The position numbers were made by a program, and so were the translations under genes. Below are positions 1 through 11,200 of a DNA stretch of 12,451 bases, piece after piece. How positions within the stretch are numbered: the first letter of the stretch is position 1; every line of letters starts with the position of its first letter. The DNA lies in the NCBI GenBank assembly GCA_002794465.1, contig MTSL01000134.1:107830-120280 (forward strand). The letters are read 5' to 3'. The DNA is from Paramicrosporidium saccamoebae KSL3 (Eukaryota > Fungi > Cryptomycota). The notes beneath the pieces are model-generated. The model searched no databases and was not told where the DNA came from. It was given only the letters and a program-made list of their open reading frames with translations.

Positions 1-240
1 GTACGATCCTCTATCTGGTATATCTGCATGAGGTAGTGGAATGATTGTCTGAGAACACTCGTTACTAAAGAGCATCCGCTCGGCATTGGTGTCCGACCCA
101 GGTAGCGGTCCCAGGCCAGTTTGTTTGTATTAAGAATGGCTACCTATAAAGAAGCCATATACTTTGATAAAATTGTGTTCACTCATCAACAAGGGGGTTA
201 CTTTCAACCTCACAATAACCATGTATTTAGTTGTGTGCTA

Positions 241-2380: not shown

Positions 2381-4720
2381 ATGTCACGGGCAGCGACAGT
2401 AGTGGCTCTCAACCAGATTTGCCGTATTGGGTCACTAATTGCATCGAACAAGGAATACCCGTGTCTTTGGGTACCCTCAAGGACAACATTGATGTCTTTA
2501 GATGAATTAGATAACCCACTTGTAAGAAATCCGTCTGCTGAGCCAGACGGCACTGTGAATCCAGGTTCGCTTCGCTGGGAATTCATAAAGAGGGATTTGA
2601 AGGAAAAAGAATCTGAATTTATCCGCTGGCAGGAGTACACGTTTCTGGTGGGCACTTGGAATATCAATGGACAGGAAGTGGGTGGTAGTTTGCTTCCGTG
2701 GTTACAACCTGGTCCCGACTCGCCGGACTTTGTGTTCATCACCCTGCAGGAGATGGATCGGAGGGCCGAGGCATTTGTTGTCTCAGTTAGCAGCAAGGAA
2801 GCCACTTGGAATGCCCTCTTGTTGCAAAACTTGCAAGTTGCATATCCAGATTTCAAGTATTCCCTGGTAACATCTCGCTCGTTGGTGGGTATCTATGCAG
2901 CCATGTTTGCAAAGGATGAACTTTTGCCATCCATCACCAACATCAGCTCTGCCACCGCAGCGTGCGGCATGATGGGTATGATGGGCAATAAAGGGGCCGC
3001 CGGGCTGCGTGTCAAGATTAAGCACGAGTACGTATGCTTTGTGGGATCACATTTGGCTCCTCATCTTGAAAATGTCTTGCGTCGCAACCAAGACTATGCT
3101 GACATTTCACGGCGCCTTTTGTTTCCGTCATCTGCCCGCGGCATCTACGAATCCACAAGTGAAGAGCTGCTACACACGTGGAGCGAAAGGTTCACACCTG
3201 CCACCATCTGGGATTGCGGAATACTAATTTGGGCTGGTGACCTGAATTACCGAATTTCCTGTCCTGCTCTTGAGACTAGAGATCTGGCCCTCTCGGGAAA
3301 TTACGATGAAATGCTAAAGGCGGATCAGCTGGGTAAAGAGATTGAGGCTGGACGTGCATTTCAAAACTTTACAGAAGGCCTGATTAGCTTTGCGCCAAGC
3401 TACAAGTACGACACCGGGTCTGACTGCTTTGACTCTAAACCAGAGGGGCGGGCGCCTGCATATACGGACAGAATTTTATTTAGGAGAAGCGATCAATTAA
3501 CTCCTGTCAAGTATTACTCGGCAATGAGTCTCAAGAGTAGCGACCACAAGCCAGTGGGGTGTGTCCTCCGTGCCCAATGTCGGGTTATCAACACGAATGG
3601 CTTTGAGTCGGCTCTCTCAGAAACGCTTCGTAAGGTGGACGTCTTTGAAAATGAAGCAATGCCAATAACTGTTGTATCTGCAAACGTTCTCGACTTTGGC
3701 AGTGTAGTCTTTCAACGAGCAACCCGACGTTCTTTTGAAATTCTCAATACTGGCCATGTAGTGGCAAGGTTCAGCTTTGTCCCACGTCCCCAGCAAAATG
3801 GCATATCGGCTCCCTGGATTCACATTCAGCCTCATCGAGGGATTGTTTTACCCGGTATAGGCTGTTGACCAATTCGCCTAACGCGCTTTTAGGCTCTTCG
3901 GCTGAGATTCAAGTTTATCTGTCCATTGACAAAGATGCAGCCAGTCAGATGAACGCAGGTCAGGCCGCTCCCGAAGACGTTCTCATCCTCCACGTCGACA
4001 GCGGACGTGACCACTTTATAAGTATCGAAGGACAGTTCCGTAAAACGCCCTTCTGTCTATCTTTGGATGAGTTATTCAACAACGACTACATTGTGAGACT
4101 TGCAAATGTACAGGGCGAAGAGTTTTTCTTCCGCGGGATTCCAAAGCCTGTCACGAGACTTGTAGAATTTCTGGTGCAACATGGAAAAACCGTGCCAAAC
4201 CTGTTCCTCGAGTCAGGACAAGCCGAGATGCTTCGCGCTATACAAGACGCTATAGATGCCGACGAGCCGTTGTCTGGTGAGTTGTGCACAGATATCGGCT
4301 TGTATTCTGTGGCTGAGACTTTGTTGAGATTTTTGGACACCCTTAGGCAGCCGGTCATTCCGTTTGGCTTTTTCGCGCGATGTATGGAAAGTTACAACAG
4401 TGCCGGTGCAGCTCTAGAGGTTATATTTTCTCAAACAGGCGCATTTACTCGTAGTTGGTTGACGAATTACCGCCGATACACTTGCAAGTCTTTGAATACC
4501 TAAGGGTGTTCATACGTGATATTATACTTCCCGCTAACACGAGCTTAAGGGCAGAGGATTTATGTATTGCGCTAGGCTATGGCTTACCTGTTTAGCCGCA
4601 GTTTTCGGAAAGGTCCTTGTGAAGCCTCCACCACGACCGACGACCCTGAACAAGGAGTACCGGCAAATAGACCAGAAACGAGCAGTATTCCTGCTACACT
4701 TTTATACTACATTCATTTGA
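2381..4720 (+). CDS. OCRL: OCRL/INPP5B-family inositol polyphosphate 5-phosphatase (5-phosphatase + ASH + RhoGAP-like). Exons 2381-3854, 3893-4419, 4455-4563, 4596-4720, ~744 aa. 5' end uncertain.
   Basis: Catalytic motifs GTWNING, WAGDLNYRI, FAPSYKYD, PAYTDRILF and SDHKPV. ASH: FEILNTGHVVARFSFVP and EDVLILHVDSGRDHFISIEG. RhoGAP-like: IPKPVTRLVEFL, SVAETLLRFLDTLRQPVIP, ELPPIHLQVFEYL, AVFGKVLVKPP. Three GT-AG introns restore one frame to TGA at 4718-4720. Confidence 0.92.
2471..2501 (+). other. Candidate 31-nt intron linking upstream frame (ATG 2326/2341) to the OCRL main frame
   Basis: GTACCC...TTGAT...TTTAG. Removing it gives ..IPVSL-D-ELDNPLVR in frame. Size matches the other introns, but the unspliced ATG-2381 model is equally open. 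Confidence 0.35.
3855..3892 (+). other. Spliceosomal intron, 38 nt (OCRL)
   Basis: GTATAG donor, CTAAC branch motif at 3878-3882, TTTTAG acceptor. Joins IVLP-G-SSAEIQV inside the ASH domain and removes stop TGA 3866-3868. Confidence 0.93.
4420..4454 (+). other. Spliceosomal intron, 35 nt (OCRL)
   Basis: GTTATA...TTTAC...CGTAG. Joins AALE to LVDELPPIH, restoring RhoGAP homology. Confidence 0.85.
4564..4595 (+). other. Spliceosomal intron, 32 nt (OCRL)
   Basis: GTATTG...CTTAC...TTTAG. Joins RAEDL-S-AVFGKVLVKPP and removes an in-frame TAG. Confidence 0.88.
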
Positions 4721-4741
4721 TTTTGTTATATATGGGGGGGC

Positions 4742-4953
4742 ACCAGTCAGACTGCACAGCGTCCCTGCCGTTGGATGGAATAATCCAAGGCACGGTCATC
4801 AAGCAGACACCTCGACCAAGGTCGAGGACATCTGCAGCTTCGCTCTCAGGACACCGCGCTATCCATCCTCATCCTGGTTGGTTTCATGCTCTTTGATTAT
4901 GATGTCAAAGAGGAATATCTACTGTACACATGATCCTGTAGAGTACAGTCGAT
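4742..4953 (-). ncRNA. U3: U3 snoRNA (box C/D, ~212 nt, intronless)
   Basis: Minus strand reads ATCGACTGTACTCTACAGGATCA (GAC box, box A', box A). CAGGAUCA is complementary to the conserved 18S 5' UGAUCCUG. Then a CTCTTTGA..TCAAAGAG hairpin, box C' GATGAGGA (4873-4866), box B GAGAGCGA (4847-4840), a ~15-bp hairpin (including CCTCGACC/GGTCGAGG), box C TGATGA (4801-4796) and box D CTGA (4750-4747). Terminal stem ACCAG (4878-4874)/CTGGT (4746-4742). Box order and length match known U3 RNAs. Confidence 0.95.
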
Positions 4954-4977
4954 ACTGTCCCTGGGCTGCAGCCCTGG

Positions 4978-4984
4978 TTTTATA
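4978..4984 (-). promoter_or_regulatory. TATA box of U3 (TATAAAA at -31)
   Basis: TATAAAA starts 31 nt upstream of the predicted U3 5' end (4953). Confidence 0.75.
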
Positions 4985-5009
4985 CTCGAGCGGCCGCGGC
5001 AGTGGCCAC

Positions 5010-5023
5010 GGATTCTATGGGAT
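5010..5023 (-). promoter_or_regulatory. Candidate upstream (PSE/USE-like) element of U3, ATCCCATAGAATCC
   Basis: Similar to GTCCCACAATTCC upstream of the second snoRNA and to the plant USE core RTCCCACA. The function is inferred. Confidence 0.4.
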
Positions 5024-5063
5024 AGGACTTTTCAATATAATTTTCACATTTTGATTGGTCGAA

Positions 5064-5807
5064 ATGAAGAAAGCAGTGGCTCATGCCGCATTGGACGAAC
5101 TAAAGGGTTTCTTTGACCAAGGATTTACAGAAGAGAGGCCCTTTGTGTTTGGATTAGGCACTGGTAGCACAGTCGCCGAGTTTTGGCCCATTTTTCACAA
5201 GTATTTGCAGACGACTAATCAAAAAAATGTGGTAATTATCCCAACCTCACACCAAAGCAAACAGCTCGTCTTGTCCAGCTCTTGCAGGTATCCTTTGGTA
5301 GAGCCACAGCAGTATCCGACAGTTGACTGTCTCGTGGATGGGTTCGATGAAATCGAATTATGCCAAGGTGGAATGCTCAAAGGCGGCGGAGGAGCACACA
5401 CGCTTGAAAAGCTGGTGGCCCAATGCTCCAAACACACCATATATATTGGAACATACGAAAAGGTTGGCGAGAAACTTGGAAACCGCGAGGTCGCAATACC
5501 CGTCGAAGTAATCTCGCCCGCTGTTCATTATATCATGTCGCAACTTTCTGATCTAGGCGGAACATGTGAGATTCGCGAAAGCAATAAAGGCAAAGTGGGA
5601 CCTGTCACTACTGACCTGGGCAACCTAATCGTGGATTGGCATCTTCCGCCTGCCCACCCGCTATGGGATAATATTGATGATCTAAGTAAGCAGATCCAAG
5701 CCATCACAGGAGTTGTTGCCTGCGGCATCTTTGTCGGTCAAGTTGAACTGGCCATCATGGCTCGAGAAGACGGTAGCCTGCTTTACAAACGTTACGCCAG
5801 ATGGTAA
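5064..5807 (+). CDS. RKI1: Ribose-5-phosphate isomerase A, 247 aa
   Basis: GLGTGST, DG(F)DE, KGGGG..LEKLVA, IPVEV and GPVTTDLGNLIVD motifs, with RpiA length. The track start at 5055 is TTG; the first ATG is 5064. Confidence 0.93.
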   Translation: MKKAVAHAALDELKGFFDQGFTEERPFVFGLGTGSTVAEFWPIFHKYLQTTNQKNVVIIPTSHQSKQLVLSSSCRYPLVEPQQYPTVDCLVDGFDEIELCQGGMLKGGGGAHTLEKLVAQCSKHTIYIGTYEKVGEKLGNREVAIPVEVISPAVHYIMSQLSDLGGTCEIRESNKGKVGPVTTDLGNLIVDWHLPPAHPLWDNIDDLSKQIQAITGVVACGIFVGQVELAIMAREDGSLLYKRYARW

Positions 5808-5834
5808 TGTAAATAGATCGAAAGCGGCATCTAA

Positions 5835-5909
5835 TAGCAAGAGTACTTTTGTCGCATAGTAGGGATAATACCACGGACCTTGTCAGGCGGGAACCCGTTC
5901 ACTATTAAT
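5835..5909 (+). repeat. Dispersed repeat, copy 1 (partner at 12358-12451)
   Basis: Three collinear blocks: TAGCAAGAGTA 11/11; GTCGCRTAGTRGGGATAATACCACRGAC 25/28 (5851-5878 vs 12397-12424); GTTCACTNNTAAT 11/13. Confidence 0.85.
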
Positions 5910-6080
5910 CCAACAGCCTAATTCAGGCGAGAAGAGACAAGGTGAGAAAGTAACTTATCCACTGTTCACTCCTCACCATTCGCTATTCACTTTTCACTGC
6001 TTGATGCTAATCTCAAACTCGCAAGGATACAGATTTCACTGTTCTCACATACACACCTAATCAATCCTCTACATCACACT

Positions 6081-6086
6081 TTTATT
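6081..6086 (-). promoter_or_regulatory. Candidate AATAAA polyadenylation signal of the WD40 gene
   Basis: AATAAA about 90 nt after the WD40 stop, followed on the minus strand by G/T-rich sequence. Confidence 0.45.
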
Positions 6087-6176
6087 AAGGTATCGGACGC
6101 CTTTACACGCTACCATCCTCAAACACGCCGGATTATGGGATCGCTATCAGGATTACCAGTCATAGGCGGATATTAT

Positions 6177-7865
6177 CTAACAGGATGTAGTAAAATCTAC
6201 AAAATTGGCAGAATTGTCCGTTCCAATAGCAACTATAACATTTCCGGACGGCCAAAATTCACAGCCAAGAAAGCGCTTCTCGCCGCTAAATTCTATCGAC
6301 CGTACTGGAGCGGCTGCCTCGTTCATGTACCTCAGATCCCATATATTGACCGCAGAGATGCGGGAATCTGGTGCAGAGGTTCCAAAGGCAACAAGATTGC
6401 CGTCAGGGGACCAACCCGGACGCATGTACCGTGTGGGAGATTGTTCAGCATGTCCAAACGCTTTAAATCCTTGCCCAAGAGGGCCCCGGTGGTCCAAGAG
6501 ACGTAGCTGCTGCGATCGGCTGCAAAAAGTGACTATAATGCTATTTGGATGGTGAGCATTGGTGAGCAGCTGTGAAATGCGAAACTCGTATCGATGGCTG
6601 AATGTTGGACGAGACTCTTTCAACGACCATCCCAACAGCCGACAATCGGCTCCGCCGCTCCATAGAATTTCGGGAGACGCGGCTACTTGCGTTATTGCCT
6701 GGACAGCAGATGTATGATAGCGATGGACTTCCTTTGTACTGGTCACATGAGCCTGGTAATCCAATTCCCATAGAGTGATAGTCTTGTCTAGCCCTCCCGA
6801 CAGCAACTTTGCCCGGTTCGACCGCATCGGCTCATATAGAGAGCTGAGTGTACTTATACTCTTCTGATGAGGTGAGTTGGCTGAAGTGAGCACTATTGGC
6901 ACTGGCTCTGAATCGTGCCGGTATGGCAAAAATAGCAAAGATGACGCTTGACCTGAGGAGTCTGTCTCTACACTGCTACCATTTGATGTGCTAGCATCTA
7001 CAGTGGAAAATACAAATCCATCTAATAATGGCGCAGAGCACATATTTTCAGGAAAGCATGGTCTTTTCAAATAGGACGGTAGAAATACTGTGCGAGTTGT
7101 CATCTGTTTTCGGACAGAATTGTACTGAACAGAACCATCTAGGGAGGACGTAATCATTAAATCGTCATGTCCAGCACCAGCAAACATCAGGCATCTGGGC
7201 TTTCGAACGAAAAACTTTGTTTTAATCGCCACTGACACATCTCGGATCAGTCCTTTATCTCCACTCAAATTCTTCGGTTTGGTCTCTGACAGCATGGGAG
7301 AGTTTAATTCAGTGAGCCTTGGGAGAGCATCAAGAGATTTTTTCGGCATGGGAGAATTCAATTCATTAAACCTTGGAAGGGCATCAAGGGACTTTGTCGA
7401 TATGGAAGAGTTTGGTTCATTAAGTCTTGTAAGAGGATCAAGAGACATGGATTGGGCAGTGGACCCAAATTCTCGCGATAGACATTCCATAGAGTCGCTC
7501 TCAAGAAGAACAGTAAGCTCACCCATCAGCACGCTAATTCGTTCAAAGCTTTTAGCCGCAGCCGAAGTATGCATAGTATACAGTTCGCGCTCCTTTTCTA
7601 GCTCAAGTTGGATAGCACGGAAACGAGGATTAGGCGAGGATAACGAGCCCCGTGACGCTGGTGCCGACCTGATGGAGGGAGACATGGAAGTTCTATCTAG
7701 TAGCGGGGAGGCAGTCCTCTTCCCAGGGACAGTAGAGCGAGAAGGCTGTCCGACTAGAGCCGCTCTTTTAGTCGATGAATCAGATAGGTGAGGCTTCTCC
7801 GTTTTGCCCGAAATTGGGACCAGCATGCTGGAGCCGAGAAGCTCATCGGGAAAGGACAAATTCAT
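6177..7865 (-). CDS. Uncharacterised protein, 562 aa: low-complexity N-terminus, short predicted coiled coil, 18-aa x3 repeat, C-terminal WD40 propeller
   Basis: WD40-like units TSSLDGSVQY, LLSGGLDKTITLW, HTSAV..WSGGADCRLLGW, QLRLLDHR and WSPDGNLVAFG..NIWDLRY. The track start at 7904 is GTG; the first ATG is 7865. Confidence 0.88.
   Translation of the reverse strand: MNLSFPDELLGSSMLVPISGKTEKPHLSDSSTKRAALVGQPSRSTVPGKRTASPLLDRTSMSPSIRSAPASRGSLSSPNPRFRAIQLELEKERELYTMHTSAAAKSFERISVLMGELTVLLESDSMECLSREFGSTAQSMSLDPLTRLNEPNSSISTKSLDALPRFNELNSPMPKKSLDALPRLTELNSPMLSETKPKNLSGDKGLIRDVSVAIKTKFFVRKPRCLMFAGAGHDDLMITSSLDGSVQYNSVRKQMTTRTVFLPSYLKRPCFPENMCSAPLLDGFVFSTVDASTSNGSSVETDSSGQASSLLFLPYRHDSEPVPIVLTSANSPHQKSISTLSSLYEPMRSNRAKLLSGGLDKTITLWELDYQAHVTSTKEVHRYHTSAVQAITQVAASPEILWSGGADCRLLGWSLKESRPTFSHRYEFRISQLLTNAHHPNSIIVTFCSRSQQLRLLDHRGPLGQGFKAFGHAEQSPTRYMRPGWSPDGNLVAFGTSAPDSRISAVNIWDLRYMNEAAAPVRSIEFSGEKRFLGCEFWPSGNVIVAIGTDNSANFVDFTTSC
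7292..7446 (-). repeat. 54-nt (18-aa) coding tandem repeat, ~3 copies
   Basis: SLDPLTRLNEPNSSISTK / SLDALPRFNELNSPMPKK / SLDALPRLTELNSPMLSE. DNA units start at 7292, 7346 and 7400 on the + strand. Confidence 0.9.
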
Positions 7866-7897
7866 GCTAGAATCCACTAGAGATGAACAATGAGGCC

Positions 7898-7932
7898 GTC
7901 CCACAATTCCCCGACTCTGGCTAGGGTATAAA
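7898..7932 (+). promoter_or_regulatory. Candidate snoRNA promoter: GTCCCACAATTCC (7898-7910) plus TATAAA (7927-7932)
   Basis: The same two-element arrangement is seen upstream of U3, and it lies ~30-40 nt before the box C/D RNA. Confidence 0.5.
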
Positions 7933-7965
7933 GCACTGGAGACCCTGGTACTTTTTCGATTTGTA

Positions 7966-8106
7966 ACTGACCTTCACAAGGTTTTAGTGGCCAAGGATGA
8001 GTACGAACGTGCGGTATGACTGTGTCCTCGGCATATGTCTATGCCTTTGGTGTATTCGTATTGCCTAGTAGGATACCACTGGAGATACAAGTCTCTGAGG
8101 CCACTA
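7966..8106 (+). ncRNA. Box C/D snoRNA with 5' leader; candidate U13/snR45 (18S helix-45 ac4C guide). 5' end approximate (7958-7968).
   Basis: Perfect 8-bp terminal stem TAGTGGCC (7985-7992)/GGCCACTA (8099-8106), 3-nt bulge AAG, box C GATGA (7996-8000) and box D TCTGA (8094-8098): canonical kink-turn geometry. Internal stems TACGAA/TTCGTA and GGCATA/TATGCC. Leader TGACCTTCACAAGGTTT pairs with the conserved 18S 3' sequence GAACCUGCGGAAGGAUCA. T5 at 8111-8115. Confidence 0.7.
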
Positions 8107-8277
8107 CCCATTTTTAACAAAATCAACTGTTCGCGAGTACTACCTGCACGTCAGTGTATTATGCATGTGTATTGGCTATTGTCTCAATAAACTCGTTACT
8201 TCTTGTCATAGTAAAGTGCGGATGTCTTTCTGAATATTACAAAAATATGAACCCTTGTTAATTGGCACCGTTTTCGA

Positions 8278-11200
8278 ATGTTGGGCGGTGGACTGTCAGG
8301 AGGTCATGACTCGGAAAACCGTGCCGCCCAATTGAGACAAAGCGCGCGCACAGTTACTGCATGCCTTACAAGAGACGAACAACAGATACCTGACCCATGG
8401 GATCTTTTACAATCCTCGTACTCTCGAGACTACCTCCCGCCAGGTAGCGCGGGAGAAATGCATCTTCAAGTTCGCCAGGTCCATGTGATACCTGATATCC
8501 TTATGGCCCAATTCGAAGGACAAGAGTGTCGTTGCTTTATGGGACTATTTGCTCAAATTGGCCGCGTATGGATGACTGTGGACAATAGGCTGTTCCTGTG
8601 GGATTATGCCACTGGGCGCGATTATACCTGTTTCGACGAACTGGATCAAGTAATCATTGATGTGGCGTTGGTAAAGCCCAGAGCTGACATTTTCATTTCA
8701 TCCATCAAGCACCTGCTTGTAGTAGTTACTGCCGCAGAAATTGTCATTCTTGGAGTCTCCTTCAATTCTTCGGGAGCTGAGACTGAAGGCGACCTGGTTA
8801 TCCATCGCACCGGACTGCACTTTCCAAGCGACGAAATAAACATGCTCTCGGTCGTTGGAACGAGAACTGGACGAATATTTGCTGGAGGACAGGATGGGAA
8901 TATATACGAATTTACTTACCAGTCTGACGAGGGCTGGTTCACTCGGAAATGCCGAAAAGTCAACAAAACCTCTTCAGCATTGGCTTACTTGACTCCTACT
9001 TTTCTTCGCATGGCGCAGTCTGGTTCGGCTATTGTGTCACTGGCCTTTGATGCTGGCAGGGATTTGCTGTATGCTCTTGGAGAGGATTCCTCTATTCAAG
9101 CGTTCCATTTGGGGAAATTTGACAATGCTTTTGACAAGATTGGACATGCATCGGATATATTTGAAAGGGCCTCAAGTCTCTGTCCCACTGGCGTGCTAAA
9201 CAAAAAGTCATTCAAGGTGGCGGCAATTTCTGCAGTGGGGCTAGAGGATTCCGCATTTGTTCATCTAGTGGCCATCACTACGTGTGGAATCAAGTTGTAT
9301 TTTACAACTTTGAAAAGAGACGAGAGGGCTTATTCGAGGAATCAGATCATTGCCTCATCAAGCCTCCCTGTAACGTTTGAAATGATCCATGTGCGGCTTC
9401 CAGCCGAGGAGGGAAGACAGCGAGATGCTCGACGGATGTTTAATGCATGGAATCCCAATATTCACACCGCCTTGTATCGAAATGGAGTCATGCTGGCAGC
9501 CAGTGCAATTAGTAACCAAGAAGACATTGTGCTTGCCACGATTCTGAACCAGTCCGTTGCCATGACTTCGGGTAGAGGAGGCTCATTGGAATGTGTCTCT
9601 GAAGTCAAGATTGAGGGCAAAATCTGGGACATTGCTGAGCTCTCCCAACCCGAATGCAGCACGGTTCCAAAGGTATCGGCTTCCTTCCACGAAGCCACGT
9701 CCCCTCTTGTCACTCAATTTCGTCGCTTTTTGCTTCTCTCCAATTCTGGTGTCTATTCTGTTTCAAAATCTAGTCCCGTTGAAGAGTTGCAAAAACTTTT
9801 AGTCGACTCTAATGGTAATATGGAGAGTGAACATCTCCGCCATTTCTTCGAGTCCTATTCTGCCGACCAAGGCTGCTTCTTGTCAATAGTTTTGGCGTGC
9901 TCGGTGCAAAGTTCTTGGAAGTCTTTTGGCTCTTCCTCCTACCGTCCAAGTATGGACTCAAAGACGTCTGCCAATCTTGCTCTCTGGTCAGTCAATGCCA
10001 TGATCCGGCACGGAGGTGAACCGCGTGTTGCCCAAACGGCCATATCCGGCGTGGACTATATCGGCACGGGGAGTGTTCTGAACTTTCCTACCTATGGTAG
10101 TAGAATTGAGTACGAATTCTCAAATCTTCATCGTGGTCTTTACTTGTATTTTGCACGTCTTGTTGGGTCTTTCTGGAATCAGCCTGTTCAATCCTTCTCA
10201 GAGCCACAAACTGATATCCTGATGGCCCTTCATTCGTATTGCGAATTTCTTGAACGAAATCCCGGCCTTGCGTCCCGCACTCTGTTGACTTCTAACGCAC
10301 CCGCCAAGCACATTGTTTCACGAGAAATCCAGATGAAACTCGACGAAGCCTACAACGCTGAGAATCAGTCCATTAGAACGCTAGTTTGGCTAGTCAAGGC
10401 TACTCTGGAGCTCTTGTCCTTCCTGTCCATCTGTCGCGACTATCATATCCTGGAGCCTGCCTTGAGATCAAGCCACGATATTCAAAAAATTGAATTTGAA
10501 GAATTAATCGCAACACCCAGAGGACGCGATCTCGTTTCAGACATTGCCACGGCCTTGGTGCAAAAGCAGCTTAAAATGCGTGCGTCTGTGGATTCATTGT
10601 GTCAAATTCTACTGCAAAGGTGTCCCACATTCTTTGGGGAGGGCGAAATTGTCATATTCCAGGGCACTGAGTGTCTGGAGCGCGCACTCCAAACGCGAGA
10701 CTCGGCGGAACGCAATTTACAGCTTCAGGAATCCTTAAAACTTTTCCTCCGTGGATGCTCCTCAATGTCGCTTGCGACATTGTCCGAGATTTCTCAAAAG
10801 TACCAGAGCTTAGCTTTTTTCCCTGGCCTGATCGAGCTTGGCCTGTGTTCCGCCCAATCCCGTGATACCGACAATATTGCATTGGCCGCTTTCCGCGCGC
10901 CCAACATTCAGCTCAATACACAGCAGCAAGAAATTATCAACTCTCGGGAAGGGATCTATTCCTTTATTTTCGAAGCGCTCAAAGCCGTGCACGGAATCGA
11001 AGCACGAAGCATTTCTGCGCTCGTGGGGCAAATTGGTACTTTTGTCTTTATTGTCTTTATGGTTTAGATGTTGAAAGGTTACAAAAGGAGACCCTTGGTC
11101 GTGCGGTTAAATCAAGGGACGAGCTTTTCCATCTAAAGCTGTATGATTGGATGGTTTCAGAGCATTTGGGTTCGCTTCTTCTTGATATGGAGACTCCATA

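Follow-up and report, generated by a model that had tools for sequence, protein, structure and literature searches.

The window, a 12,451-nt stretch of the genome of Paramicrosporidium saccamoebae, carries two small-RNA genes. This species is an amoeba parasite belonging to Rozellomycota (Fungi). The first gene, located on the minus strand at 4952..4742, was identified by Rfam as a full-length U3 snoRNA (RF00012, model positions 1-219) with 78 bits, the gathering score being 34. The second, here termed RNA2, lies at about 7959-8106 on the plus strand and appears to code for an unclassified box C/D-like RNA with a predicted 5' end. The features of both genes are listed in Table 1.

Table 1. Features of the U3 and RNA2 genes and their flanks in the window.
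Feature	Position	Strand	Remarks
U3 snoRNA gene	4742..4953	-	A of ATCGACUGUACU (4953) is the likely start; Rfam RF00012
U3 upstream element ATCCCATAGAA, at -70	5013..5023	-	Consensus RTCCCAYAAA; TCCCA.A.A columns invariant in the alignment
U3 TATA box TATAAAA, at -32	4978..4984	-	T at 4984; TATAAA invariant in the five-lineage alignment
CCAGGG immediately past the U3 TATA box	4972..4977	-	Kept in 5/9 lineages
3' box AACAAAATCAA, 14 nt beyond the U3 3' end	4717..4727	-	Matches the AAYAAAATYAA pattern
RNA2	7959..8106	+	5' end predicted from TATA +32; conserved body 7968-8106
RNA2 internal T4	7982-7985	+	Within RNA2
RNA2 box C-like GGAUGAG	7995-8001	+	Within RNA2
RNA2 box D CUGA	8095-8098	+	Within RNA2
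RNA2 terminal stem	7985-7992 with 8099-8106	+	Within RNA2
RNA2 upstream element GTCCCACAATT	7898..7908	+	RTCCCACAA before RNA2 in 8/9 lineages; ACCCACAA in L130
RNA2 TATA box TATAAAG	7927..7933	+	28 nt past the T of TCCCA; TATAAA at 7927-7932
CCCTGGT element, 16 nt past the RNA2 TATA box	7943..7949	+	CCCYGG at TATA +16..19 in the lineages measured
T5 directly upstream of the predicted RNA2 start (TATA +25..29)	7952..7956	+	T4-T6 or pyrimidine tract likewise in L130, L131, L132, L133
T5 after RNA2	8111..8115	+	Read here as AT-rich lead-in of the 3' box; absent in L005, L002, L008, L129, L131, L132, L133
3' box AACAAAATCAA, 9 nt beyond the RNA2 terminal stem	8116..8126	+	Identical to the U3 box of the same genome

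The window was compared with the syntenic loci of eight divergent relatives (L002, L005, L008, L129 and L130-L133). Among these nine lineages, identity is no higher than 47-67% for the RpiA and Nup155 proteins. An exact look-up of the full RpiA ORF of the window gave no record, and the annotated 171-aa model took its place. U3 orthologues were present in all eight relatives, with 70-82 bits for those scored by Rfam (seven scored). The U3 genes of L002 and L133 were recognised via the conserved U3 5' sequence, not by an Rfam score.

Orthologues of RNA2 were found in the relatives with nhmmer (E 9e-30 to 9e-12). A box C-like motif and CUGA, comparable to the canonical RUGAUGA and CUGA, were kept in all of them and are joined by a terminal stem, which is the organization of a box C/D RNA. 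The box C-like motif is GGAUGAG, replaced by GGAUGAA in L133 and GGAUGAU in L130; the GGAUGAG variant is also the C' box of U3 in P. saccamoebae. The core of the terminal stem (4-5 bp) was kept, with C-G changed to U-G and U-A, and an internal hairpin showed compensatory changes in 6 of 14 pairs, with 96% of cells paired. The stretch directly 5' of box D varied among the orthologues. Neither the window copy nor its most divergent orthologue (L130) matched an Rfam family even at E up to 10, the hits being at chance level only. A weak nhmmer match to U3 (E 0.013) had raised the possibility that RNA2 is a U3 paralogue; this was rejected, the local alignment score being equalled by 63 of 1000 shuffles.

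The first-pass annotation had proposed that an RTCCCAYA element and a TATA box precede both genes. Its coordinates were exact (T of TCCCA at 5022 and of TATA at 4984 for U3, 7899 and 7927 for RNA2), and the elements proved to be conserved in the nine lineages. The U3 element is contained in ATCCCATAGAATCC, the reverse complement of 5010-5023, and that of RNA2 in GTCCCACAATTCC at 7898-7910. The U3 TATA box is placed at -32 because of the Rfam position of U3 on the minus strand; it lies at -32 to -34 in all lineages, including L130-L133, which also carry TATAAA, and the upstream element lies at -70 to -74. The only invariant columns of the U3 upstream alignment were those within TCCCA.A.A, TATAAA.CC.GGG and the U3 start, the CC.GGG part holding for 5/9 lineages, since TATAAA[AG]CC[AG]GGG is lacking in L130-L133. 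The RNA2 upstream regions kept TCCCACAA (ACCCACAA in L130) followed by a TATA-like box, which reads TATAAAG, TATATC, TTATAG, TATTTG, TACAAG or TATAAG. Across the lineages the element is located 65-87 nt from the RNA genes. These elements, their positions and their conservation were observed directly in syntenic loci whose spacers are otherwise unalignable, and such phylogenetic footprinting is the strongest evidence against chance. As is typical of snRNA-type promoters, different small-RNA genes have in common an element conserved at about -55 to -75. Our results thus support a gene-external promoter of the USE/PSE plus TATA type that is common to U3 and RNA2.

The specificity of these signals lies in their combination. 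The TCCCAYA 7-mer alone is frequent in the window (11 matches, 2.9 expected), and nine of the 11 matches are in or near protein-coding ORFs without a TATA box, one of them about 40 nt beyond the WD40 stop codon. In 138 kb of clade sequence searched on both strands, TCCCAYAR followed by TATA 24-46 nt downstream and by the 3' box 120-450 nt downstream was found solely at the U3 and RNA2 genes, and no third gene with the same signals was detected in these loci. In addition, Rfam revealed no spliceosomal snRNA genes (U1, U2, U4, U5, U6) in about 166 kb of clade loci, and no tRNA genes, sought as a Pol III yardstick, were found in the clade loci.

The gene order of the locus could suggest a different origin of these signals. 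In all lineages seen, Nup155 follows RNA2 directly, so that the conserved block might be the 5' UTR or promoter of Nup155 instead of an independent gene. Likewise, both upstream elements of the window are situated 34-42 nt from a divergent ATG, and TCCCAYA might be a promoter element of the divergent RpiA and WD40 genes. However, the distance between the U3 element and the RpiA ATG ranges from 42 to 287 nt among lineages, but that between the element and U3 is constant, and L008 and L130, which have no WD40 neighbour, retain the element upstream of RNA2. Moreover, the box C/D-like ends, terminal stem and compensatory changes in the hairpin of RNA2 speak against its being a part of Nup155, and so does the 3' box that it has in common with U3. 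We therefore consider it highly improbable that RNA2 and the TCCCAYA elements belong to the neighbouring protein-coding genes.

The two promoters differ in the distance between the upstream element and the TATA box. From the T of TCCCA to the T of TATA, this distance is 38 nt at the window U3 (ATCCCATAGAA to TATAAAA), and it was 38-40 nt at the U3 genes of all nine lineages (38, 39, 39, 39, 40, 39, 39, 40 and 38). At RNA2, it was 28, 28, 29, 29, 30, approximately 30, 31 and 31 nt in 8/9 lineages, values uncertain by 1-2 nt where the TATA box is degenerate (TATTTG, TACAAG, TTATGA). In the remaining lineage, L130, some 10 nt inserted between the element and the TATA box place RNA2 at 41 nt, inside the long class. 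None of the 18 promoters had a spacing of 32-37 nt, and the two classes are about one helical turn apart. The first-pass annotation had noted a one-turn difference (38 and 28 nt) in the window, and the comparison among lineages confirmed that the classes are conserved. Through the common ancestry of the nine lineages, part of this constancy in spacing is inherited, and it does not amount to nine independent observations. The signals have been kept across eight divergent relatives; thus both the shared promoter and the one-turn offset between the U3 and RNA2 promoters are real and under selection, and the offset is evolutionarily maintained.

Alternatively, the start site of both genes might be set by the upstream element about 70 nt away, with the TATA-like sequence of RNA2 displaced or irrelevant. 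The four lineages compared first have a conserved RNA2 body that begins 65-70 nt past the element, as in U3, and CCWGG occurs about 45 nt past the element in both genes, a fixed distance that led to the idea of a start set by the element. With nine lineages the fixed distance of CCWGG was rejected: the RNA2 body begins anywhere from 65 to 87 nt past the element, and CCCYGG tracks the TATA box (+16 to +19), not the element (+44 to +58). A start determined by the element is accordingly very doubtful.

A second conserved signal was found downstream of both genes. The pattern AAYAAAATYAA has two matches in the window, where 0.05 are expected, one after U3 and the other after RNA2, and a slightly looser version gave 7 matches in five clade loci, each directly after U3 or RNA2. 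The element begins 9-15 nt beyond the two RNAs. This corresponds to the snRNA 3' box, which is conserved at sn(o)RNA genes with a transcription unit of their own and lies 9-19 nt downstream of the mature 3' end. Because AAYAAAATYAA departs from the consensus of metazoans and from that of plants, the resemblance is one of functional analogy, not of sequence membership. The boxes of U3 and RNA2 were also observed to change in parallel within each genome (AAGAAAATCAA and AAGAAAATTAA in L130, AAAAAAGTCAA and AAAAAAAGCAA in L131, AAAAAAGTCAA and AAGAAAAGCAA in L132), implying one 3'-end pathway for both genes.

It has been reported in plants and ciliates that the spacing between the upstream element and TATA selects Pol II or Pol III. 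A code of this kind had been proposed for this locus, with the long spacing directing U3 to Pol II and the short spacing directing RNA2 to Pol III, ending at the T5. The two discrete classes, one turn apart and conserved across lineages, are in line with it, and so is the T5 at 8111-8115; the first-pass annotation was right that this run follows RNA2 and that no T-run follows the window U3 (none of at least 4 T in 200 nt). However, a T-run directly follows RNA2 in only 2/9 lineages, namely the window (T5, spacing 28) and L130 (T4, spacing 41). No run of at least 4 T was present after RNA2 in L005, L002, L008, L129, L131 or L132 (scans of about 80 nt, some reaching 200 nt), nor for about 200 nt in L133. 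Among the eight U3 genes with a visible 3' flank, one is followed by T-runs (T4 and T6 in L133), and its spacing is 38. T-runs thus do not follow the spacing class. Furthermore, all nine RNA2 (eight aligned orthologues and L133) contain an internal T4-T5, which in L005 is a T5, equal in length to the supposed terminator, and several lineages have a T4-T6 tract just 5' of the point where RNA2 is predicted to start. RNA2 therefore lacks the pattern of a type-3 Pol III gene, having a terminator-like run after 2/9 copies and internal runs in 9/9. From a comparison of the window flanks (CCCATTTTTAACAAAATCAA after RNA2, CCCATATATAACAAAATCAA after U3), the T5 is read as the lead-in of the shared box, and the same 3' box occurs in both spacing classes instead of marking the long one. 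Because the T5 is unconserved, a T6 follows the L133 U3, internal T4-T5 occur in RNA2 and both genes have the same co-varying 3' box, the equation of short spacing with Pol III is not supported, and we regard selection of the polymerase by spacing as improbable. It also seems unlikely that RNA2 is a Pol III box C/D snoRNA without a canonical T-run terminator, a variant in which the spacing code of plants and ciliates would be ancestral to eukaryotes and survive in Rozellomycota.

Our results are better described by two independent snRNA-type units, most likely transcribed by Pol II, in which the two spacings are permitted helical phases and not a polymerase selector; we hold this explanation to be probable, with some reserve. 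A SNAPc-like factor would bind the upstream element RTCCCAYAAA, with the TATA box some 32 nt ahead of the start and a gene-specific GC-rich CCWGGG element near it. The spacings of 28-31 and 38-41 nt would be two rotational phases, about one helical turn apart, that let TBP and the upstream factor share one face of the DNA, three or four turns from each other. RNA polymerase II would then most likely transcribe both U3 and RNA2, a class assignment read solely from terminator and 3'-box logic in two gene families, and the box AAYAAAATYAA 9-15 nt beyond the mature 3' end may direct 3'-end formation. In the window species itself, however, the T5 after RNA2 is usable as a terminator, which counts against this explanation.

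The promoter resembles that of plant snRNA genes (USE, RTCCCACATCG) in its TCCCACA core, a TATA box at about -30, control that is exclusively gene-external, two spacing classes one turn apart and, as on plant Pol II genes, a 3' box. The likeness to plants drawn in the first-pass annotation holds for the core, the TATA box and the two classes; it is not specific to plants, as elements of the same type are the DUSE and the USEs of protists. The 3' half of the element reads AAA here and TCG in plants. Published spacings between USE and TATA in plant snRNA genes are 23-24 bp, which corresponds to 34 nt in plant-like U6 genes measured identically. As the first-pass annotation had cautioned, the absolute spacings differ, both classes being 4-5 nt shorter here. 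In addition, the short class here has a 3' box and no conserved T-run, and the link to the polymerase seen in plants was not observed; U3, which Pol III transcribes in plants, looks here like a Pol II gene.

The Dictyostelium DUSE ([AT]CCCA[AT]AA) has been described about 60-63 nt upstream of ncRNA genes of the Pol II as well as the Pol III class, snoRNA and snRNA genes among them, and USEs of the CCCAYA type have been listed for many protists and plants. The agreement of the motif with these known elements of the SNAPc type favours the snRNA-type explanation. The TCCCATAA variants match the DUSE exactly, TCCCACAA differs from it by one base (C for W), and the distances are similar, with the element here at -60 to -74. 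The two systems belong to Amoebozoa and Fungi, respectively, and the binding factor is putative in both; TATA spacing classes and a 3' box are not described in the DUSE literature examined. Similarly, metazoans have a proximal element (PSE, SNAPc) at about -55 that is common to Pol II and Pol III small-RNA genes, and their Pol II small-RNA genes carry an Integrator-dependent 3' box 9-19 nt past the RNA. However, the metazoan box (GTTTN0-3AAARNNAGA) does not match AAYAAAATYAA, and in vertebrates it is the presence of TATA, not spacing, that marks Pol III.

Budding yeast, also a fungus, transcribes U3 (SNR17) and other snoRNAs by Pol II from independent genes that have TATA boxes. Its snoRNA 3' ends use Nrd1/Nab3 sites (NNS termination), and its Pol III snoRNA snR52 has internal A and B boxes; none of the budding-yeast snoRNA signals resembles the U3 and RNA2 elements described here. 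To our knowledge, budding and fission yeasts lack small-RNA promoters of the PSE/SNAPc type. Our literature search returned nothing on snRNA promoters of Paramicrosporidium or Rozellomycota, nor on the distribution of SNAPc in fungi. The presence of a DUSE/USE-like element with TATA, a strict helical-phase spacing rule and a dedicated 3' box in this clade of Rozellomycota, relatives of microsporidia, bears on how far the snRNA transcription system of ancestral eukaryotes persisted in the deepest fungal branches.

The USE has already served to find small-RNA genes in plants and algae. The three-signal signature, being specific to U3 and RNA2 in the 138 kb searched, could likewise locate independently transcribed small RNAs in poorly annotated parasite genomes, namely snRNAs and snoRNAs, and perhaps telomerase RNA. 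When metagenomes were scanned for U6 genes that have TCCCAYA 85-115 nt ahead of ACAGAGA, at least 120 stretches of DNA matched. Among the matches listed, no U6 gene was attributable to the Paramicrosporidium clade; the majority came from plants (AGTCCCACATCG, with TATA 34 nt on), and the rest were algal- or stramenopile-like and cnidarian-like U6 genes and a few fungi, the cnidarian-like ones among them carrying GTCCCACAAGG 35 nt before TATA.

The U3 snoRNA gene and the gene for RNA2, a box C/D-like RNA, share a TCCCAYA-type upstream element and a TATA box (see the table). This had been claimed for both genes in the first-pass annotation, and the comparison of nine lineages strengthened it; the coordinates given there for the elements, the TATA boxes, the two spacings and T5 were all correct on re-check. 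The gene order in the window is TyrRS, OCRL-like phosphatase, U3 (minus strand), RpiA, WD40 protein (minus strand), RNA2, and Nup155, and the genome, earlier called opisthokont-like, indeed belongs to Rozellomycota within Fungi. The RpiA ORF of the window shares 100% identity with a ribose-5-phosphate isomerase annotated for Paramicrosporidium saccamoebae, which is encoded on contig MTSL01000134.1 of GCA_002794465.1. Syntenic contigs of eight further lineages were reached via homologues of RpiA (47-50% identity) and Nup155 (50-67%). They were obtained from public read-archive assemblies (L002, L005, L007, L008/L134, L129, L131, and L132), NCBI assembly GCA_047514055.1 (L130), and an ENA metagenome (L133). 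The position of U3 is syntenic in every lineage with a contig extending that far.

Table. Promoter and 3'-end features of the U3 and RNA2 genes in the window
Feature	Position	Strand	Remark
U3 snoRNA	4952..4742	-	Rfam 78 bits
U3 upstream element ATCCCATAGAATCC	5023..5010	-	38 nt before TATAAAA
U3 TATA box TATAAAA	4984..4978	-	32 nt before U3 nucleotide 1
3' box AACAAAATCAA	4717-4727	-	14 nt after U3
RNA2 upstream element GTCCCACAATTCC	7898-7910	+	28 nt before TATAAA
RNA2 TATA box TATAAA	7927-7932	+	28 nt after T of TCCCA
T5	8111-8115	+	after RNA2; supposed Pol III terminator of the first-pass annotation
3' box AACAAAATCAA	8116-8126	+	9 nt after RNA2 stem

In an alignment of five regions upstream of U3, only TCCCA.A.A, TATAAA, and CC.GGG were invariant outside U3 itself, and the 30 nt between the conserved blocks were unalignable. 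Across the nine lineages, the TATA box is located 32-34 nt before U3, and the spacing (T of TCCCA to T of TATA) amounts to 38, 39, 39, 39, 40, 39, 39, 40, and 38 nt. The upstream element is anywhere from 42 to 287 nt away from the RpiA start codon, depending on the lineage, so the element belongs to U3 and not to RpiA. The spacer between element and TATA box (4985-5012 in the window) is unconserved and carries a short palindrome that differs among the lineages inspected, namely GTGGCCAC and GCGGCCGC in the window, GGATCCGGTTGATCC in L005, CTTCTCCC..GGGAGAAG in L007, and CCGGC..GCCGG in L002.

RTCCCACAA was present upstream of every RNA2 orthologue, with the variant ACCCACAA in L130. The spacing is 28, 28, 29, 29, 30, ~30, 31, and 31 nt, and 41 nt in L130; the TATA-like boxes are TATAAAG, TATAAAG, TATATC, TTATAG, TATTTG, TACAAG, TATAAG, TATAAG, and TTATGA. 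A CCCYGG motif follows 16-19 nt after the TATA box, and its distance is kept to the TATA box and not to the upstream element. Thus, TATA and CCCYGG constitute the RNA2 core, relative to which the upstream element can shift. The conserved RNA2 body begins 35-46 nt past the TATA box, and a predicted start about 32 nt past TATA, as in U3, would give a variable leader of 3-14 nt. In the RNA2 promoters of L131 and L132, GCCAGGG/CCCTGGC versus GCCGGGG/CCCCGGC represents an inverted repeat with compensatory changes.

The bare TCCCAYA 7-mer exceeds its expected count in the window about fourfold (11 observed, 2.9 expected). Nine of the 11 copies are inside or close beside protein-coding ORFs and have no TATA box, one of them about 40 nt past the WD40 stop codon, and therefore the 7-mer alone proves little. 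Trp-Asp codons in WD-repeat genes, read as TGGGAT on the opposite strand, may account for part of the excess.

RNA2 is kept in all nine lineages (nhmmer E values from 9e-30 to 9e-12), while its flanks are not conserved. Its box C-like motif is GGAUGAG, a variant that also forms the C' box of P. saccamoebae U3, its box D is CUGA, and the two are joined by a short terminal stem. In its central hairpin, 6 of 14 pairs have compensatory double changes and 96% of cells are paired, clearly more than in shuffled and slid controls. These features indicate that RNA2 is a real box C/D-like RNA with a defined structure and a length of about 145 nt, with predicted ends near 7959 (5') and 8106 (3') on the plus strand. 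It is unclassified, since neither the window copy nor the most divergent orthologue matched an Rfam family at E values up to 10. A relationship with U3 was suspected and then dropped, as the similarity was not significant. At the 5' end, a hairpin, ACCUUCACAAGGU, is followed by a tract of four to five U.

The two genes also share a 3' box. The 11-mer AACAAAATCAA is identical after both genes and occurs exactly twice in the window, against 0.05 expected, and the sequences around the two copies are nearly identical (CCCATATATAACAAAATCAA vs CCCATTTTTAACAAAATCAA); in the AT-rich lead-in to the box, T5 is a variant that differs by two bases. With both strands counted, the strict pattern occurred 7 times at five loci, each time immediately downstream of U3 or RNA2. 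In more distant lineages the box has drifted, in parallel between the two genes of each genome, to AAGAAAAT[CT]AA in L130 and to AAAAAAGTCAA with AAAAAAAGCAA or AAGAAAAGCAA in L131 and L132, as two targets of one putative recognition factor would show. The box is clade-specific. The shared 3' box and the recognition of RNA2 as a conserved RNA without a described family are additions to the first-pass annotation.

The offset of one helical turn between the two promoters proved to be conserved across lineages. All 18 promoters (U3 and RNA2 in nine lineages) have spacings of 28-31 or 38-41 nt, with none between, corresponding to about 2.7-2.95 and 3.6-3.9 helical turns. U3 stays in the long class in all nine lineages. 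RNA2 departed from the short class a single time: in L130, about 10 nt were inserted between the upstream element and a GAAAATTT block common to L130, L131, and L132, which brought the promoter into the long class. This pattern is expected under same-face phasing, in which a factor on the upstream element would have to be positioned on TBP's side of the helix and three or four turns would be tolerated. Shared ancestry of the lineages and the degeneracy of several RNA2 TATA boxes make the evidence for phasing weaker than it may appear. The spacing could in addition carry regulatory meaning, such as promoter strength, with which the pattern is compatible; the U3 TATAAA is always perfect, and that of RNA2 is often imperfect.

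The spacing had also been interpreted as a possible polymerase switch, with the short spacing of RNA2 and the T5 behind it marking a Pol III gene. As had been noted, U3 has no such T-run: no run of four or more T is present within 200 nt downstream in the window. T5 is not conserved among lineages. No run of four or more T follows RNA2 over about 80 nt, or over up to 200 nt in the longer scans, in L005, L002, L008, L129, L131, and L132, or for about 200 nt in L133. T-runs follow long-spaced genes too: the long-spaced RNA2 of L130 has T4 after the RNA, and CTTTTCATTTTTT directly precedes the 3' box of the long-spaced U3 in L133, and therefore T-runs at this position occur in both spacing classes. 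Moreover, every RNA2 has an internal GGUUUU(U) tract, which in L005 reaches five U, the same length as the supposed terminator, and the same 3' box stands behind both genes. These results make a polymerase switch with RNA2 as a Pol III gene improbable. In fungi and animals, U3 is transcribed by Pol II, and here 7 of the 8 lineages with a visible U3 3' flank have no terminator-like T-run behind the gene. Most simply, U3 and RNA2 would both be Pol II units whose 3' ends form in the snRNA manner.

The upstream element has no specific plant character. Its variants match the Dictyostelium DUSE, [AT]CCCA[AT]AA, exactly or differ from it by one base (C for W); the DUSE precedes many ncRNA genes, of the Pol II as well as the Pol III class, by about 60-63 nt. 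The element also falls within the CCCAYA-type USEs tabulated in green algae, Blastocystis, Stentor, and Plasmodiophora. In plants, the spacing code is 23-24 versus 32-34 bp between elements, or about 34 and 43 nt in our T-to-T measure, so both rozellid classes are 4-5 nt shorter. As known here from U3 and RNA2, the system of this clade putatively functions in the manner of a SNAPc-type promoter combined with a 3' box. The literature searched contained no description of such promoters in Rozellomycota. They represent a new lineage-specific example of a known promoter kind, and offer a clear, inexpensive route to a decisive test of the spacing code.

Among the matches listed in a metagenome scan, TCCCACA-type elements were located 33-36 nt before the TATA box of plant and cnidarian-like U6 genes. 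The animal-type U6 genes of metagenome contigs L032, L074, L109, L117, and L127, which are probably from corals, have GTCCCACAAGG 35 nt before a TATATATA box; some animals, therefore, also use a proximal element of the TCCCACA type.

Several minor observations concern the locus. The WD40 gene, which separates RpiA and RNA2 in the window, is missing in L008/L134 and L130, where RNA2 and its promoter are still directly upstream of Nup155. Three independent assemblies of one relative (L002, L003, and L004) end at one and the same base within U3, suggesting that U3 is multi-copy in that relative. The public RpiA model of 171 aa (5064-5628, with an intron) looks truncated; the uninterrupted plus-strand ORF in the region 5064-5807 codes for 247 aa, and 90-99% of its length is covered in alignments with homologues of 237-258 aa. 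Two ORFs each make up the OCRL-like and the Nup155 reading frames, which are interrupted (3865-3868 and 11067-11151), probably by short introns or frame changes, and Nup155 is entered as two genes in the public annotation.
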